Assembly: GCF_001194135.2 (NCBI RefSeq) | Contig: NC_068991.1 | Span: 18,255,332-18,311,995, forward strand | Source: Octopus bimaculoides | Lineage: Eukaryota | Length of the DNA: 56,664 nucleotides | Direction: 5' to 3' | Part shown: piece by piece, positions 15,064-23,321 of the stretch | How positions within the stretch are numbered: position 1 is the first letter of the stretch | Layout: every line of letters starts with the position of its first letter | Made by a program: the position numbers and the translations under genes | The notes under the pieces: model-generated | The model's input: the letters and a program-made list of their open reading frames with translations, nothing else | Told to the model about the DNA's origin: nothing | Database searches by the model: none

Positions 15064-17978
15064 AAAGGCGGTGAGTTGGCAGATGCAGAATGCGAGACAT
15101 TCATCTCTAACATTACTTACAAATTTGACCACTAAGGTAAACTTATTCAGAAACGCAATCTGCATAAAAACACAATAATGTTTATTTGAGTGAATAAATG
15201 TATTTGTATCAGAAATAATTAGGCGGTAAAGAAAAGTCACCATTAGCTCAATAACTACTATTATTTTAATAAATGAGTGAGATCATACTTGATGTTATAA
15301 CCTAAATAACTTGAATTAAAATTATATCTTCAGTGGTGAGGACAGTCAATATCTAAGCAACAAAAATTTATTAATTAAATAAATGGTCTTTCGTATCATG
15401 TACGTATAATAACGGACTACTCAATGAAAGGAAATAAATTATTTTCACTGTAAATCACATTCTTTATTTCGTATAATAGTGAAAATAATTCTAGATAAAC
15501 TCATGTGTGATGAGAAAAAAAAGGTCATGTGAAGCTCAATGAAGAGTTCGATATTTACTTGTGGCAAAACTCTATATCCCTTCTATTGTGTCCGTATGCA
15601 ACATTGTATCGTTTGGATATACATAATGTGTGAAAACTGTACGTGTTATGTTCCTTTTCATTTTATTTTCCGCCATTATACGTACATAATTCGAAAGATC
15701 ACAAATGAAATTAATCAAATATCAACTGCACAGGGATGTATGTATAATGTTTAGTAGTACGGAGACATGTCGCAGTCTGGAAAGATTTCGGCAATCAAAT
15801 AGCCAAATTGTGACTTCTGCAAAGGTTAGTGAGTATGAAGGTGGCGAGCTGGCAAAATGCTTAGCGGTATTTCTTCCAACTCTACAATGCGAGTTCAAAA
15901 TCCGCCGAGGTCGATTTTGTCTTTTATTCTTTCGGGGATTGATAAAATAAGTACCAGTTGAGCACTGTGGTCAATGTAATCGACTAATCCATCAGCCAAA
16001 ATTGCTTGTATTATGCCAAAGTTTGAAAAGATCTTAAATTAAAAAGAACGACTGTTGTAGGGATACACAAATATACCTGATATTTCGGCAAATACGGGAG
16101 ACAACTCGTGACAGGTTTCGACCTAACTGTTTCGCTGGTGGATTAATAATGAAAGAACCACTAACATGTACATTATTATATTCAAGTAAACGGGAAAAAG
16201 GAAACGTCAACTGCATAAAAAAGACAAAACTAAATAAATAACCAAGTTAGTGAGGATAGCTAGATGACAATTTACATCCGCCCCACTATATTCTGATTCC
16301 GAATTTCGCGAAGGACGATTTTAACTTTTGTCTGTGTTCGAGACGAAAGATAGTGTTTTCGCCGATGAGAGAATCTATTAATTCCCTTTATAACCATTAA
16401 TTTTGTTAGTTGTTAATGGTTAGCCCAAACTGAAGCTTGCCGAAAGGGCTTCCAAATGTGACCATCCTATCTTTTAAGATCGTATATGACTTCTTTATTT
16501 AACGTCTTCTGTTTTGTATTTTCTTAGTTGAAAACGTTGGGTGTGACATGAGGCTGATGCATCTACTATTTCTTGCAACTTAAGCGACCACGTAGGTTAC
16601 AACCTTCTCACGAGTTGACATGGTAAAGTGCCAAGCTAAGTGGTATATTTAGATGAGCTATTACTATCATAATTAAAAAATTCTGAACTATTAACTTTAT
16701 TTCTCATGTTCTTCTTTCACTCAATATCTCGGTCGGTGATTTATTCGATCGTCTTCAGGTGGTAAAATTACTACTCCTGTTCTAAAATCCTCTCACCTCC
16801 CCACTTCATTCTGATTTCGAATCTTACTCAAAGATATACAAGCGCACACACAAATATCGTAAAGGATAAATAGTTAATCTAATTTAAAATTAATAGACAC
16901 TCACACAAACGAGAGAGCGAGAGAGGGTGAAAAAGTGCAAGATAGAAAGAGAGGGGAAGAGAAAGAGATAGATAGATAAATAAAGAGTGAATAGATAGAT
17001 AGATAGATAGATAAATAAAGAGTGAAGCAGAGTACGTATACAGTTATGATACCTTGAAATGATCGCAAAATAGATCGATCGAAATGTACAAAAGAAAAGA
17101 CTGCGAATTGAGGGTTAATTCTCTAGAAACTTTTCGTTAATTTCACGGTATCTAAATGCGACCTTATCTTTTTGTGACTTTAATCCAGACACATACGATC
17201 TTATCCTTCAATACCCTAGAAATAGGTCGATAAAAATAATACCAGTAATATAAGAGGTCCTGCATATTCAGTTAGACTCCTACTTCTCTATATTAATTGG
17301 CCTTATGTCTAAAGATTAAATACTAATTCAACTATATACGAGGTTGTATATTTACATCTGTATTTATAAATATGTTTGATCCAGATGACATCGAATTAGG
17401 CTACAAACTAAGGGAAGATAAGTCATGCGTAAAACGTGGAGAAACCCTCGCCAAAGAAAACCATTCTCAGAGCTATAACCTCTATAAACACATAGGTGCG
17501 TGCGTACGAAAGATGAATACACACACACACACATACACACATACATAAATAAATACATACATACATAAATAAATACATACATACATATATATATANNNNN
17601 NNNNNNNNNNNNNNNNNNNNNNNNNNNNNNNNNNNNNNNNNNNNNNNNNNNNNNNNNNNNNNNNNNNNNNNNNNNNNNNNNNNNNNNNNNNNNNNNNNNN
17701 NNNNNNNNNNNNNNNNNNNNNNNNNNNNNNNNNNNNNNNNNNNNNNNNNNNNNNNNNNNNNNNNNNNNNNNNNNNNNNNNNNNNNNNNNNNNNNNNNNNN
17801 NNNNNNNNNNNNNNNNNNNNNNNNNNNNNNNNNNNNNNNNNNNNNNNNNNNNNNNNNNNNNNNNNNNNNNNNNNNNTGTGCGCGCGCACGAGTGTACACC
17901 TATATATGTATGTATGCATGCATGTATGTATTAACTGAAATTAAAACGGCATTGAGAACTGGCGACAACGTAGAGAGA

Positions 17979-18196: not shown

Positions 18197-18232
18197 GGAA
18201 TTTCCCATGATGCTCTACTGCTACTGACGTCA
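18197..18232. promoter_or_regulatory. Putative WDR26 proximal promoter motifs: NF-kB-like site and palindromic CRE
   Basis: GGAATTTCCC at 18197-18206 (reverse complement GGGAAATTCC); TGACGTCA at 18225-18232. Confidence 0.4.
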
Positions 18233-18449
18233 TCGAGCAAAACAAATTTGGTCACCAACTTGTGTTGTGTTCGCACTGGTCGGAGCTTGTCTTCACTCAA
18301 ACAACACAAATAACAAGAGCAACAAGAAACCCCAATATAACAATCACCACCACAACAAAAACAACCAACACCATCATCACAATATACCAAACAACAACAA
18401 AGAAAAAAAAAACATAGTGGAAAAGGGGTCCGACTGATCAGCGATATTA

Positions 18450-18470
18450 ATGCTACAACAAATTACTTAA
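18450..18470 (+). promoter_or_regulatory. Candidate uORF (MLQQIT*) in the WDR26 leader
   Basis: ATG CTA CAA CAA ATT ACT TAA in weak context; ends 14 nt before the candidate CUG. Relevant only if the TSS is upstream. Confidence 0.45.
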
Positions 18471-18484
18471 GCAATCCGGCAATT

Positions 18485-18562
18485 CTGGCATCGTCTTCAG
18501 AATCAGAAGACGGTGGAGTTTCTCCCCCACCGCCCAAAAAGCAACGAGTCTCAGCCGCTAAC
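18485..18562 (+). CDS. WDR26: Putative CUG-initiated in-frame N-terminal extension of WDR26 (26 aa: LASSSESEDGGVSPPPPKKQRVSAAN)
   Basis: Frame is open from TAA 18338-18340 to the AUG with no in-frame ATG. CTG context is gcaATTCTGGca (A at -3, G at +4). The peptide resembles the recalled human non-AUG extension LASASSSSDSDTGGASPPPRKKPRASAA. Confidence 0.65.
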
Positions 18563-18765
18563 ATGCAGTCGAATGGCTGCCCTCAGCACAATGGAGAGAG
18601 CGAGGAAATAGCGTCTACTTCCCGACAGAACGGTTCTTGTTCTGCTACGGCGAATGGTGAGGTGGCCACACTAGAAGATAGACAACATCTTTTGAAAACC
18701 ATGTCCCAGGCGGATCAAGACGTAGTTCGATTAATCGGCCAGCATCTCCGTGGGCTCGGCTTGAA
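18563..18765 (+). CDS. WDR26: WDR26 coding exon 1 from the AUG (MQSNG...DVVRLIGQHLRGLGL; start of LisH)
   Basis: ATG at 18563 (aacATGc); donor AA|GTGAGT at 18765/18766, phase 2. The ORF-track stop at 18769 is intronic. Confidence 0.93.
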
Positions 18766-18919
18766 GTGAGTCTCTCTCCACTGTCTGAATGAAGAAAACA
18801 TTTTAGTTTTATATAGATTATGTATACACTCGTATACACACACACACACACAAATGCATATATATATATATATGTATTATGTATAGATACACATATTATG
18901 TATGTATACATATATTTAT

Positions 18920-20180: not shown

Positions 20181-20710
20181 TATACCCACAAATATATATA
20201 TACTAGGATACTACCTACCACCTCTATATATATATATATATATATATATNNNNNNNNNNNNNNNNNNNNNCTACTACCTATATATATATATATAAATAAG
20301 GATTCTATCTACCACCTATATATATATATATATATATATATAATTTAGTGGATTTTTTTAGTGTGTGTGTGTGTGCGTATTTTATATAATCCTCCCTTTT
20401 AAATTCGACTACAGCTGTTAATTTCTACGTAATGTCTGTTATGTGAAGCCAACTAGACCATATATAAATCACCTTTTATTTATATTCACAGATTTTGTGA
20501 GTGTATATATATATATCAGTTTATTTTAAAATTGGCTAGCAATAATGTACCATGTTTTAAAAAAAGAAAAACAGATCTTTCAACCTTTATTTCGAAATAC
20601 CTACGCTCAGCTAATAAATTGTGAATTTATCTTTCTCCATATAATTTTTTTTTAGAAAACCACTCCAAAACAAAAACATTATCCTTCATTAATATAATTT
20701 AAGAATATAT

Positions 20711-22421
20711 NNNNNNNNNNNNNNNNNNNNNNNNNNNNNNNNNNNNNNNNNNNNNNNNNNNNNNNNNNNNNNNNNNNNNNNNNNNNNNNNNNNNNNNNNN
20801 NNNNNNNNNNNNNNNNNNNNNNNNNNNNNNNNNNNNNNNNNNNNNNNNNNNNNNNNNNNNNNNNNNNNNNNNNNNNNNNNNNNNNNNNNNNNNNNNNNNN
20901 NNNNNNNNNNNNNNNNNNNNNNNNNNNNNNNNNNNNNNNNNNNNNNNNNNNNNNNNNNNNNNNNNNNNNNNNNNNNNNNNNNNNNNNNNNNNNNNNNNNN
21001 NNNNNNNNNNNNNNNNNNNNNNNNNNNNNNNNNNNNNNNNNNNNNNNNNNNNNNNNNNNNNNNNNNNNNNNNNNNNNNNNNNNNNNNNNNNNNNNNNNNN
21101 NNNNNNNNNNNNNNNNNNNNNNNNNNNNNNNNNNNNNNNNNNNNNNNNNNNNNNNNNNNNNNNNNNNNNNNNNNNNNNNNNNNNNNNNNNNNNNNNNNNN
21201 NNNNNNNNNNNNNNNNNNNNNNNNNNNNNNNNNNNNNNNNNNNNNNNNNNNNNNNNNNNNNNNNNNNNNNNNNNNNNNNNNNNNNNNNNNNNNNNNNNNN
21301 NNNNNNNNNNNNNNNNNNNNNNNNNNNNNNNNNNNNNNNNNNNNNNNNNNNNNNNNNNNNNNNNNNNNNNNNNNNNNNNNNNNNNNNNNNNNNNNNNNNN
21401 NNNNNNNNNNNNNNNNNNNNNNNNNNNNNNNNNNNNNNNNNNNNNNNNNNNNNNNNNNNNNNNNNNNNNNNNNNNNNNNNNNNNNNNNNNNNNNNNNNNN
21501 NNNNNNNNNNNNNNNNNNNNNNNNNNNNNNNNNNNNNNNNNNNNNNNNNNNNNNNNNNNNNNNNNNNNNNNNNNNNNNNNNNNNNNNNNNNNNNNNNNNN
21601 NNNNNNNNNNNNNNNNNNNNNNNNNNNNNATATAAACTTCATATTTTAATTCTGTATATGTATCATTATCTGTTCTCTCTCTCTCTCTCTCTTTTTTTTT
21701 TTTCTCCGTTTGTCTAAATTGGTTTGAGGTGTGTTTAGGGGAAGTGTGACAGTGATGATGGTAATGAGAATATATTCAAATGTTGATCTTTATACCTTTC
21801 TCTCTCTCTCTCTCTCTCGTGTGTGTTGGCATTATTTTCAGCTGGTGAGAGATGTCTCCACCTTCTGAATCGAAACCGAATCGCGTACATTGGCTCACCT
21901 AATCACTGGATCTTACTACTACTACTACTACTACTGCTAGAAAAGGTTGGCAGAAACTACAGATCATCGGAGAAAATATCTGCATTATTTTCGTTGTGCT
22001 ACTTTTACGTTGAGAGTTCGAATCTAGCGGAAGTCGGCTTTACCGTTCGTGTCCTTCTACAGTCGATAAAACAAAGTTCTACGGGGTTGATGGTAGTAGC
22101 TAACTCCTCACTCCCTCGAAATTGTTGGCTTTGTACCTCTAAATTCAGAAACTATAATAGTAATAATTATTATTAATGATTTTAATGCTATCAGAACAGT
22201 TGAGATCGAGATTAGCACTTGACTGACTGTCACTTTATTTTATCGATCCCTGTCGAAGGATGAAAGGCACACAATCAACTGCAGTAGGGTTTGAAATTAA
22301 TATCGGCAACACTCACAGACAGTAACAAAAAGACTGATCTTTGTGGTAATGCACTTACTAGGTTAGCTAATTGGCACATTTACCCCCTTCATGTCGGTTG
22401 GTCAGTACGTAGCGTGTCTAT

Positions 22422-22462
<41 letters not shown>

Positions 22463-23321
22463 NNNNNNNNNNNNNNNNNNNNNNNNNNNNNNNNNNNNNN
22501 NNNNNNNNNNNNNNNNNNNNNNNNNNNNNNNNNNNNNNNNNNNNNNNNNNNNNNNNNNNNNNNNNNNNNNNNNNNNNNNNNNNNNNNNNNNNNNNNNNNN
22601 NNNNNNNNNNNNNNNNNNNNNNNNNNNNNNNNNNNNNNNNNNNNNNNNNNNNNNNNNNNNNNNNNNNNNNNNNNNNNNNNNNNNNNNNNNNNNNNNNNNN
22701 NNNNNNNNNNNNNNNNNNNNNNNNNNNNNNNNNNNNNNNNNNNNNNNNNNNNNNNNNNNNNNNNNNNNNNNNNNNNNNNNNNNNNNNNNNNNNNNNNNNN
22801 NNNNNNNNNNNNNNNNNNNNNNNNNNNNNNNNNNNNNNNNNNNNNNNNNNNNNNNNNNNNNNNNNNNNNNNNNNNNNNNNNNNNNNNNNNNNNNNNNNNN
22901 NNNNNNNNNNNNNNNNNNNNNNNNNNNNNNNNNNNNNNNNNNNNNNNNNNNNNNNNNNNNNNNNNNNNNNNNNNNNNNNNNNNNNNNNNNNNNNNNNNNN
23001 NNNNNNNNNNNNNNNNNNNNNNNNNNNNNNNNNNNNNNNNNNNNNNNNNNNNNNNNNNNNNNNNNNNNNNNNNNNNNNNNNNNNNNNNNNNNNNNNNNNN
23101 NNNNNNNNNNNNNNNNNNNNNNNNNNNNNNNNNNNNNNNNNNNNNNNNNNNNNNNNNNNNNNNNNNNNNNNNNNNNNNNNNNNNNNNNNNNNNNNNNNNN
23201 NNNNNNNNNNNNNNNNNNNNNNNNNNNNNNNNNNNNNNNNNNNNNNNNNNNNNNNNNNNNNNNNNNNNNNNNNNNNNNNNNNNNNNNNNNNNNNNNNNNN
23301 NNNNNNNNNNNNNNNNNNNNN
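20711..23321. other. Two assembly gaps in WDR26 intron 1 (20711-21629 and 22463-23321)
   Basis: N runs; other gaps at 1603-1827, 3082-3091, 5373-5997, 6875-6884, 17596-17875, 20250-20270, 46006-46083 and 51365-51636. Confidence 0.98.

Follow-up and report, generated by a model that had tools for sequence, protein, structure and literature searches.

A conserved CUG codon as the probable start of an N-terminal extension of WDR26 in Octopus bimaculoides

Introduction

WDR26 is a substrate-recruiting subunit of the CTLH E3 ubiquitin ligase and a disease gene, that of Skraban-Deardorff syndrome. In the stretch of Octopus bimaculoides DNA analyzed here (the window: 56,664 nucleotides, contig NC_068991.1, positions 18,255,332 to 18,311,995 of the forward strand, with positions below counted from its first letter), the reading frame of WDR26 is open on the 5′ side of the annotated AUG, and the question is where translation of this gene begins. 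We consider it highly likely, from comparison of this sequence with its homologs, that bases 18485-18562 are WDR26 coding sequence and not 5′ untranslated region (5′-UTR), and that they begin a long isoform initiated at a CUG codon of bilaterian origin. A vertebrate counterpart has been described: WDR26 carries an ACG/CUG-initiated extension that is conserved from human to fish, and two bands were seen by western blotting of the human protein (Ivanov et al. 2011, NAR 39:4220, PMC3105428).

The WDR26 gene and its 5′ leader

Exons of WDR26 were located in the window by tblastn with a human WDR26 query that was used for exon location only. They form a colinear chain on the plus strand from 18.5 to 54.5 kb, in the order LisH motif, CTLH region, and C-terminal WD40 propeller of WDR26/GID7. 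The concatenated exons are 98% identical to a partial O. bimaculoides model (A0A0L8GR29; P0204) and 89% identical to an Octopus vulgaris model (P0203), the N-terminal residues of which agree, as read by eye, with exon 1 of the window; the closest protein matches are named WDR26 and possess the LisH and WD40 Pfam families. The O. vulgaris model begins at the AUG, and the O. bimaculoides model is without exons 1 and 2. The features of exon 1 are as follows.

18485..18487, + strand: CTG (CUG), candidate start of the long isoform; −3 is A (18482) and +4 is G (18488)
18485..18562, + strand: N-terminal extension of 26 codons, (M/L)ASSSESEDGGVSPPPPKKQRVSAAN, proposed from its translation and codon-level purifying selection
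18563..18565, + strand: annotated AUG in a fair context (aacATGc), start of the short isoform MQSNGC... and of the O. vulgaris model
18563..18765, + strand: WDR26 exon 1 downstream of the AUG, including the LisH motif DVVRLIGQHLRGLGL
18766-18771, + strand: exon 1 donor GTGAGT, the exon end being placed by means of the O. vulgaris protein (...GLGLNRTVELL)

The DNA in this region reads caatt CTG gca tcg tct tca gaa tca gaa gac ggt gga gtt tct ccc cca ccg ccc aaa aag caa cga gtc tca gcc gct aac ATG cag, and the peptide that a CUG start would add is LASSSESEDGGVSPPPPKKQRVSAAN. Inspection of the letters bore out the description given in a first-pass annotation of this DNA, namely, an in-frame CTG at 18485 with A at −3 and G at +4, located 5′ of the AUG at 18563 in a frame that is open back to the TAA at 18338-18340 without an in-frame ATG. 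The CTG-to-ATG spacing is 78 nt, or 26 codons in the same frame, and no ATG is present in any frame within 18488-18562. Additional in-frame near-cognate codons occur at 18434 (CTG), 18437 (ATC), 18446 (ATT), 18482 (ATT), and 18539 (AAG); of all these codons, the CTG at 18485 alone combines A at −3 with G at +4, and it alone is conserved in other species.

Conservation and coding signature of the extension

A search with the exon 1 translation, including the upstream frame, yielded 20 matches, all of them open reading frame (ORF) calls from eukaryotic contigs. Most of these have x-LASSSESEDGG-x-SPPP-x-KKQR 5′ of MQxNGC, and the similarity among them starts abruptly, one or two residues before the Leu. 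A profile of 13 extension-bearing sequences (A1) was searched exhaustively against 1.84 billion cluster representatives (E <= 1e-3, clusters at 50% identity) and provided 193 WDR26 exon 1 clusters, with most alignments beginning at profile positions 1-3, i.e., spanning the extension; LASSSESEDGGxSPPPxKKxR is encoded 5′ of the annotated AUG in most of the 193, and the core motif is present in 77 of the inspected sequences. Both in A1 and in an alignment of 38 diverse sequences (A2), the extension is the best-conserved segment of exon 1 after the LisH motif and exceeds the residues just 3′ of the AUG, where conservation of MQxNG reaches the vertebrates. Of the named invertebrate WDR26 models that we recovered (P0206-P0235), nearly all begin at this MQxNG or later, so the extension is systematically missing from annotation, and the comparison exposes that gap.

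We investigated the codon-level pattern of change in nine lineages for which DNA was available, using the 22 gap-free codons that follow the CTG (36 pairs). Columns were variable at 8/22 first, 6/22 second, and 19/22 third codon positions, the mean pairwise pS was 0.60 compared to a pN of 0.15, and serine was retained through both TCN and AGY codons. The large excess of synonymous over nonsynonymous change and its period-three pattern indicate that the extension is translated sequence and not an RNA or DNA element; this comparison had been proposed as a check in the first-pass annotation, and its outcome is that of a coding region.

The proposed start codon across lineages

Of 13 lineages, 12 begin the extension with CTG and one with ATG; a purine at −3 and G at +4 are common to all 13. 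The combination of CTG with A at −3 and G at +4 is found in the window and in L001, L002, L004, L005, L007, L011, L012, and L014; the lineages added to these are the bird-like L018 (act CTG gcc), L019 (atc CTG gcc), and L022, in which gcc gcc CTG gaa is a nearly perfect Kozak context. The ATG was verified on the DNA of L017, which reads ata ATG gca at the CTG position (377-379) and has a stop five codons upstream. As an internal control we used two invariant LisH leucines of the same exons, for which five different codons are used across lineages. CTG accounts for 18% of the other Leu codons in these exons, such that 12 CTGs would be expected by chance at 0.18^12 (∼1e-9) if the lineages were independent; because the lineages are related this value is an upper bound on significance, although synonymous sites between them are near saturation. 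These data support conservation of the CTG as a codon and not merely as a leucine. The residue before the Leu varies (I, S, T, or A), yet the first base of its codon is always a purine, which fits selection on the −3 nucleotide and not on the amino acid. From these comparisons, the extension very probably starts at the CUG.

Variation at this codon may extend to other entries (the proteins considered along with L017 being P0170, P0098, and P0281): two database ORFs display V at the CTG site, possibly encoded by GTG, and a Labeo rohita model begins M-ASAASSSDSE where carp has L. Along with L017, these would be start-codon swaps at one site.

The sequence upstream of the CUG

The 147-nt open frame 5′ of the CTG in the window is A/C-rich (A72 C36 G16 T23) and contains no 3′ splice-site-like sequence, its longest pyrimidine run being 3 nt. 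In every lineage with DNA, the stretch from the last in-frame stop to the CTG is free of in-frame ATGs. In-frame stops precede the CTG or ATG by two codons in oyster L004 (tga gca ata CTG), four in L011, five in L017, and six in L019, and there is no AG at a constant distance upstream of the CTG across lineages; an upstream AUG exon is thereby excluded where it is testable. The first-pass annotation had noted that no polypyrimidine acceptor lies upstream and had called such an exon unlikely; the first statement agrees with the base composition, and the second is strengthened by the four lineages with nearby stops. In molluscs and annelids, alignable conservation ends 6 nt upstream of the CTG, with nothing beyond −6.

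The locus exhibits four of the properties that Ivanov et al. (2011) adopted as criteria: a frame that is open and continuous with the coding sequence (CDS) without an in-frame AUG (in the window and 11 lineages), protein-level purifying selection within the extension, a near-cognate codon that is conserved where the block begins, has a favorable Kozak context, and is replaced by AUG in L017, and, in molluscs and annelids, conservation that ends upstream of the start. For a further property, presence in mature mRNA and translation, the support is indirect and comes from other species: a human MS peptide, the two bands of the human western blot, and intron-free full-length ORFs with the extension on three invertebrate transcript-like contigs.

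Two apparent exceptions were examined and set aside. The leading "M" of many database ORFs could be mistaken for an upstream AUG, but the DNA shows GTG or TTG starts or TGA read as Trp (L001, L018, L019, and L022). L007 seemed to be without the canonical AUG, but alignment puts the methionine of its TTMEASGG at the canonical position, and this lineage merely has a longer linker. In the second octopod (P0001, L001 at ∼3100), a TGA is read as Trp, and the upstream "coding" sequence of that entry is artefactual; gene calls made on eukaryotic contigs of this collection require verification against the DNA.

Homology with the vertebrate extension

The human 5′-UTR peptide ASAAEGVGEPGASAGR has been detected by mass spectrometry (MS) proteogenomics (Zhu et al. 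2018, PMC5834625), and the supplement of that study lists a human "strong Kozak CUG" at chr1:224622083. From this CUG to the start of the peptide at 224622011 there are 72 nt, or exactly 24 codons, a distance equal to the length of LASASSSSDSDTGGASPPPRKKPR. Among deposited vertebrate models, that of the pangolin Manis javanica reads ...ETLASASSSSDSDAGGASPPPRKKPRASAAEGVGEPGASAGR..., and those of Manis, Columba, Lepisosteus, Phoxinus, and Aldrovandia contain TLASASSSSDSDTGGASPPPRKK; in deposited or ORF-derived sequences of pangolin, pigeon, sparrow, kiwi, newt, gar, minnow, and halosaur we read ...TTAALGEETLASASSSSDSDTGGASPPPRKK(P/A/H)RASAAEG.... The sequence acc ACG gcc gct ctc ggc gag gaa act CTG gcc tcc was found in the DNA of the bird-like L018, where the ACG precedes the CTG by eight codons.

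Apart from two insertions of one residue each, every residue of the octopus peptide has its counterpart in the vertebrate one, and the CUG occupies the same place in both; the peptides are homologous and lie in orthologous genes. The vertebrate core LAS(A)SSS(S)DSD(T)GGASPPPRKKxR corresponds to LASSSESEDGGVSPPPPKKQR of octopus, and the two share the CTG-GCN pair, A at −3, G at +4, and the lack of an in-frame upstream AUG. They differ in that vertebrates have the conserved ACG eight codons upstream, which was taken as the start in PMC3105428, and a linker to the AUG that is far longer: initiation at the ACG makes the protein ∼9 kDa larger, whereas 26 residues would be added in octopus. The window, which reads ...TCC GGC AAT T before the CTG, has no ACG eight codons upstream and no conservation there; in octopus, oyster, and annelid, unlike vertebrates, conservation stops 6 nt before the CUG, so that the CUG is the only candidate. 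On this comparison the ACG looks like a vertebrate addition. The human extension with its CTG-GCC, which the first-pass annotation had put forward, was essentially right as judged by the Manis model, the L018 bird locus, and the human MS peptide, and its proposal that the peptide was retained from mollusc to vertebrate agrees with the residue alignment and the position of the CUG.

Taxonomic breadth and age

Taxa were assigned from the identity of the variable region that follows the extension to named proteins, with the following results.

P0002-P0004 / L004: oyster, 92% to Saccostrea
P0005: annelid Ridgeia piscesae, 100%
P0025: priapulid, 71% to Priapulus
P0022 and P0023: chelicerate-like, 61-63% to Tachypleus
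Centruroides vittatus model: scorpion, extension inside the annotated CDS
Trinorchestia longiramus model: amphipod, extension inside the annotated CDS

An assignment of L004/P0002-P0004 to squid was rejected in favor of oyster on account of the 92% N-terminal identity to Saccostrea. The extension is also in frame within full-length, intron-free ORFs on contigs of 2.2-6.6 kb (P0234, lophotrochozoan-like; P0236, 74% to Priapulus; P0237, arthropod-like), and these look like mRNA-derived contigs. Large match groups include those designated "...LREMGF" and "ALESS".

The block is thus present in Lophotrochozoa (octopus, oyster, and annelid), Ecdysozoa (priapulid, scorpion, and amphipod), and Deuterostomia (vertebrates), and its presence in the bilaterian ancestor is the simplest reading of a distribution across all three bilaterian branches. 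That distribution is in line with the date given to the CUG/AUG arrangement in the first-pass annotation. The same annotation had held the arrangement to be undescribed in invertebrates. This stands for the CUG itself, since our literature searches found no earlier report of a CUG extension in molluscs or other invertebrates; it does not stand for non-AUG extensions in general, because among non-vertebrate WDR26 genes a Drosophila AUU extension, the only one reported, had been described and judged to have arisen independently (PMC3105428). The vertebrate extension was therefore already known, and its homology across bilaterians appears to be unreported. We favor a single ancient bilaterian origin, in opposition to the independent invertebrate origin proposed in PMC3105428.

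Alternatives to translation from the CUG

Several points weigh against a bilaterian CUG start. The case for translation of the extension in octopus is a comparative one, drawn from sequence. Secure taxon assignments are limited to oyster, octopod, annelid, priapulid-like, chelicerate, amphipod, and vertebrate. The starts of P0234, P0236, and P0237 are as given in the database, and a prokaryote-style gene caller is the source of the artefactual leading "M" in database ORFs. Conservation reaches seven codons upstream of the CTG in the "ALESS" group and eight codons upstream (to the ACG) in vertebrates, and the start may lie a few codons further 5′ in some lineages. An upstream ORF (uORF) at 18450-18470 (see below) could lower or modulate use of the CUG, provided that the transcription start site (TSS) is upstream of it.

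With these points in mind we compared two other explanations. The region might be conserved for a non-coding function, as a 5′-UTR RNA structure or a promoter or DNA element, and remain untranslated; a six-base-pair stem (CGGUGG/CCACCG) that is nearly invariant, synonymous sites included, and the proximity of a conserved promoter block would fit such a role. The distribution of variable positions and the pS and pN values given above are contrary to it, as is the retention of serine across two codon families, and the frame is open in every lineage despite a CUG-AUG linker that ranges from 26 to >85 codons. Moreover, a human peptide from the homologous region was detected by MS (PMC5834625), and the stem is a by-product of encoding Gly-Gly...Pro-Pro that is not significant compared to shuffled sequences. 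We regard a purely non-coding role as extremely improbable. An explanation that accepts the block as coding and moves its start, either to the AUG of a spliced upstream exon or to a near-cognate codon further 5′, deserves slightly more weight and is still quite improbable. Consistent with it, 48 codons before the CTG are free of stops in the window and an assembly gap (17596-17876) is close by on the 5′ side, vertebrates have their conserved ACG and the "ALESS" group a TTG seven codons upstream with conserved residues in between, and the deposited models of Centruroides (X1), Trinorchestia, and Phoxinus join the block to putative upstream AUGs. The stops two, four, five, and six codons upstream in L004, L011, L017, and L019, however, leave no room for such a start, neither an AG nor a pyrimidine tract recurs at a fixed place across lineages (the 147 nt of the window contain none), and both amino acid and nucleotide conservation end at −6 in molluscs and annelids. 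The other in-frame near-cognates of the window are poor in context and unconserved, and the ATG of L017 is located at exactly the CTG codon. Initiation at the CUG accounts best for these observations.

Proposed mechanism and function

Given that the extension is under coding constraint, that its first codon and the context of that codon are conserved, and that it is homologous to the vertebrate one, we infer the following mechanism for octopus. A scanning 43S complex would meet the CUG at 18485 in the best near-cognate context (A at −3, G at +4), and a fraction of ribosomes would initiate there with Met-tRNAi to produce a long isoform, M-ASSSESEDGGVSPPPPKKQRVSAAN-MQSNG..., with 26 extra residues. 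The remaining ribosomes would scan 78 nt without encountering an ATG in any frame and start at the AUG at 18563 to yield the short isoform, such that leaky scanning would generate two WDR26 isoforms. Once its methionine is removed, the long isoform would have the N-terminus Ac-ASSSESEDGG..., and the predicted acetylated peptide is Ac-ASSSESEDGGVSPPPPK.

Two segments of the extension have recognizable sequence patterns.

18491..18511, + strand: serine/acidic cluster SSSESED with putative CK2-type S-x-x-E/D sites, the kinase being assigned by consensus alone
18521..18550, + strand: S-P and basic motif SPPPPKKQRV, with a putative nuclear localization signal (NLS)-like K-K/R-x-R core after the prolines

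Residues S5-S7, E10, G12, G13, P17, P18, K20, K21, and R23 of the extension are invariant in A1; among the 38 sequences of A2, P17 and K20 are invariant, and P18 and R23 are at least 90% conserved. The sequence matches, as a pattern, a monopartite NLS accompanied by CK2 and CDK sites (SSSESED, SP, and PPPKKQR). Nuclear targeting of the long isoform would be the likeliest function, although we hold this view tentatively and a little short of calling it probable, the resemblance being one of motif, which weighs against it. Literature searches for an NLS in WDR26 found nothing. If the motif acts in this manner, the choice of start codon would set the nuclear share of WDR26 and, along with it, of the CTLH E3 ligase. 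A fuller scheme is more doubtful: a bilaterian CUG of >550 million years that serves a nuclear form of CTLH, with an NLS regulated by CK2 and CDK, with initiation stringency (eIF1/eIF5, stress) re-partitioning the ligase, and with a hairpin 23 nt downstream tuning use of the CUG.

A CUG-translated extension could instead act through a basic motif that is not an NLS, serving as a pseudo-substrate or regulatory tail for the WDR26 propeller, a docking motif, or a degron. Human WDR26 recognizes an internal motif of NMNAT1, RKRKW, that overlaps the NMNAT1 NLS, and the N-terminus of YPEL5 inhibits WDR26 (PMC7616709); the PPxK(K/R)xR of the extension is a basic patch of a similar kind, carried on an N-terminal tail that is flexible. 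The motif is without the aromatic residue of the NMNAT1 degron, however, and we judge this proposal unlikely. The arrangement of acidic serines, S-P, and K-K-x-R is closer to the layout of a classical phospho-regulated NLS such as that of SV40 large-T. The "CcN" motif of that protein reportedly comprises a CK2 site, a CDK site, and an NLS, in work said to be that of Jans, Rihs and colleagues in 1991. WDR26 shares with large-T the order of an acidic serine cluster (S-x-x-E/D), S/T-P, and PPxKKxR(V), whereas its basic core is shorter (KKQR versus KKKRK) and the resemblance is one of layout only.

YPEL5 binds WDR26 directly and inhibits the CTLH E3 ligase (PMC7616709), and YPEL1, YPEL2, and YPEL4 together with WDR26 are among ten genes with non-AUG extensions conserved in all vertebrates (PMC3105428). 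This co-listing may be a coincidence or a hint of shared regulation.

Relation to known non-AUG starts

The GUG start of EIF4G2 is conserved very deeply and is the usual example of an old non-AUG start. WDR26 resembles EIF4G2/DAP5/NAT1 (GUG), TEAD1 (AUU), and MYC (CUG) in possessing a near-cognate codon in strong context that is conserved over long distances. It differs from EIF4G2 in that the GUG is the only start of that gene, whereas the non-AUG codon of WDR26 precedes a conserved AUG and two isoforms are expected, as for MYC and FGF2. The CUG-initiated long isoforms of FGF2 and MYC carry nuclear-targeting information. In those genes, as proposed for WDR26, an upstream CUG adds an N-terminal segment with basic residues, the downstream AUG product is also made, and leaky scanning sets the ratio; the FGF2 and MYC extensions, however, are restricted to vertebrates and unrelated in sequence, and nuclear targeting of WDR26 is putative. 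EIF4G2 and TEAD1 have been cited as conserved non-AUG starts (PMC11317171).

The WDR26 CUG is, on the comparisons above, very probably one of the oldest non-AUG starts known. Few non-AUG starts are known to be of such depth, and it is rare for both the codon and its Kozak context to stay the same in molluscs, annelids, priapulids, arthropods, and vertebrates. Such a case would imply that selection can keep an "inefficient" start for more than half a billion years, presumably owing to the importance of the isoform ratio. The published conclusion of independent origin (Ivanov et al., PMC3105428) would be revised accordingly. The conserved NLS-like tail offers a testable lead on the distribution of the CTLH ligase in the cell, and common constructs cloned from the annotated AUG would be without it.

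Other features of the leader and exon 1 region

Four further elements were noted near the CTG.

18197-18214, + strand: conserved promoter-proximal block, TGGAATTTCCCATGATGC
18225-18232, + strand: conserved, perfect cAMP response element (CRE)/ATF site, TGACGTCA
18450..18470, + strand: out-of-frame uORF of six codons in weak context, ATG-CTA-CAA-CAA-ATT-ACT-TAA (MLQQIT*), ending 14 nt before the CTG
18511..18532, + strand: possible hairpin pairing CGGUGG (18511-18516) with CCACCG (18527-18532), starting 23 nt after the CUG

The promoter elements (18197-18232) are located ∼255-290 nt upstream of the CTG in the window. Their conserved form is TGGAATTTCCCATGA(T/G) followed ∼10-40 nt later by the CRE/ATF site, and both are present in L001 (the second octopod), L004 (oyster), and the lophotrochozoans L005 and L011 at 134-189 nt 5′ of the CTG; the CRE alone is found in L014 at −106 and in L022 within 200 nt 5′ of the called start. 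Conservation of this block implies, though it does not prove, a TSS 5′ of the CTG. An A/C-rich low-complexity stretch (∼18290-18410) is inserted between the promoter block and the CTG in the window.

The uORF is kept in the second octopod, L001 (MIQQIT*). Upstream ATGs occur at −29 to −46 in L007, L012, L014, and L004, and none were found in L005, L011, or L002. A loosely conserved (G)ATACAA..CA element is located at about −33 in several lineages.

The hairpin would consist of a six-base-pair stem and a 10-nt loop. Among the nine closest lineages, the third codon positions without any variation (Asp9 C, Gly10 U, Pro15 A, and Pro16 G) are exactly those that pair with one another, and changes of the stem elsewhere comprise one U-G wobble and one A-U swap (a double change). 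Pair counting and folding showed that the stem (18511-18532) forms in 93% of cells with little covariation and not above shuffled sequences, and the z-score of the 81-nt fold was −1.2. Conservation of the hairpin is thus no more than suggestive, and it is partly forced by the encoding of GG...PP.

Exon 2, which holds the start of the CTLH region (NRTVELLMSESGCMLEHPAAAKF... in the O. vulgaris protein), was not found anywhere in the window and probably sits in a run-of-N gap of intron 1. Assembly gaps around exon 1 are at 17596-17876, 20250-20270, 20711-21629, and 22463-23321, and intron 1 is rich in AT/TA microsatellites.

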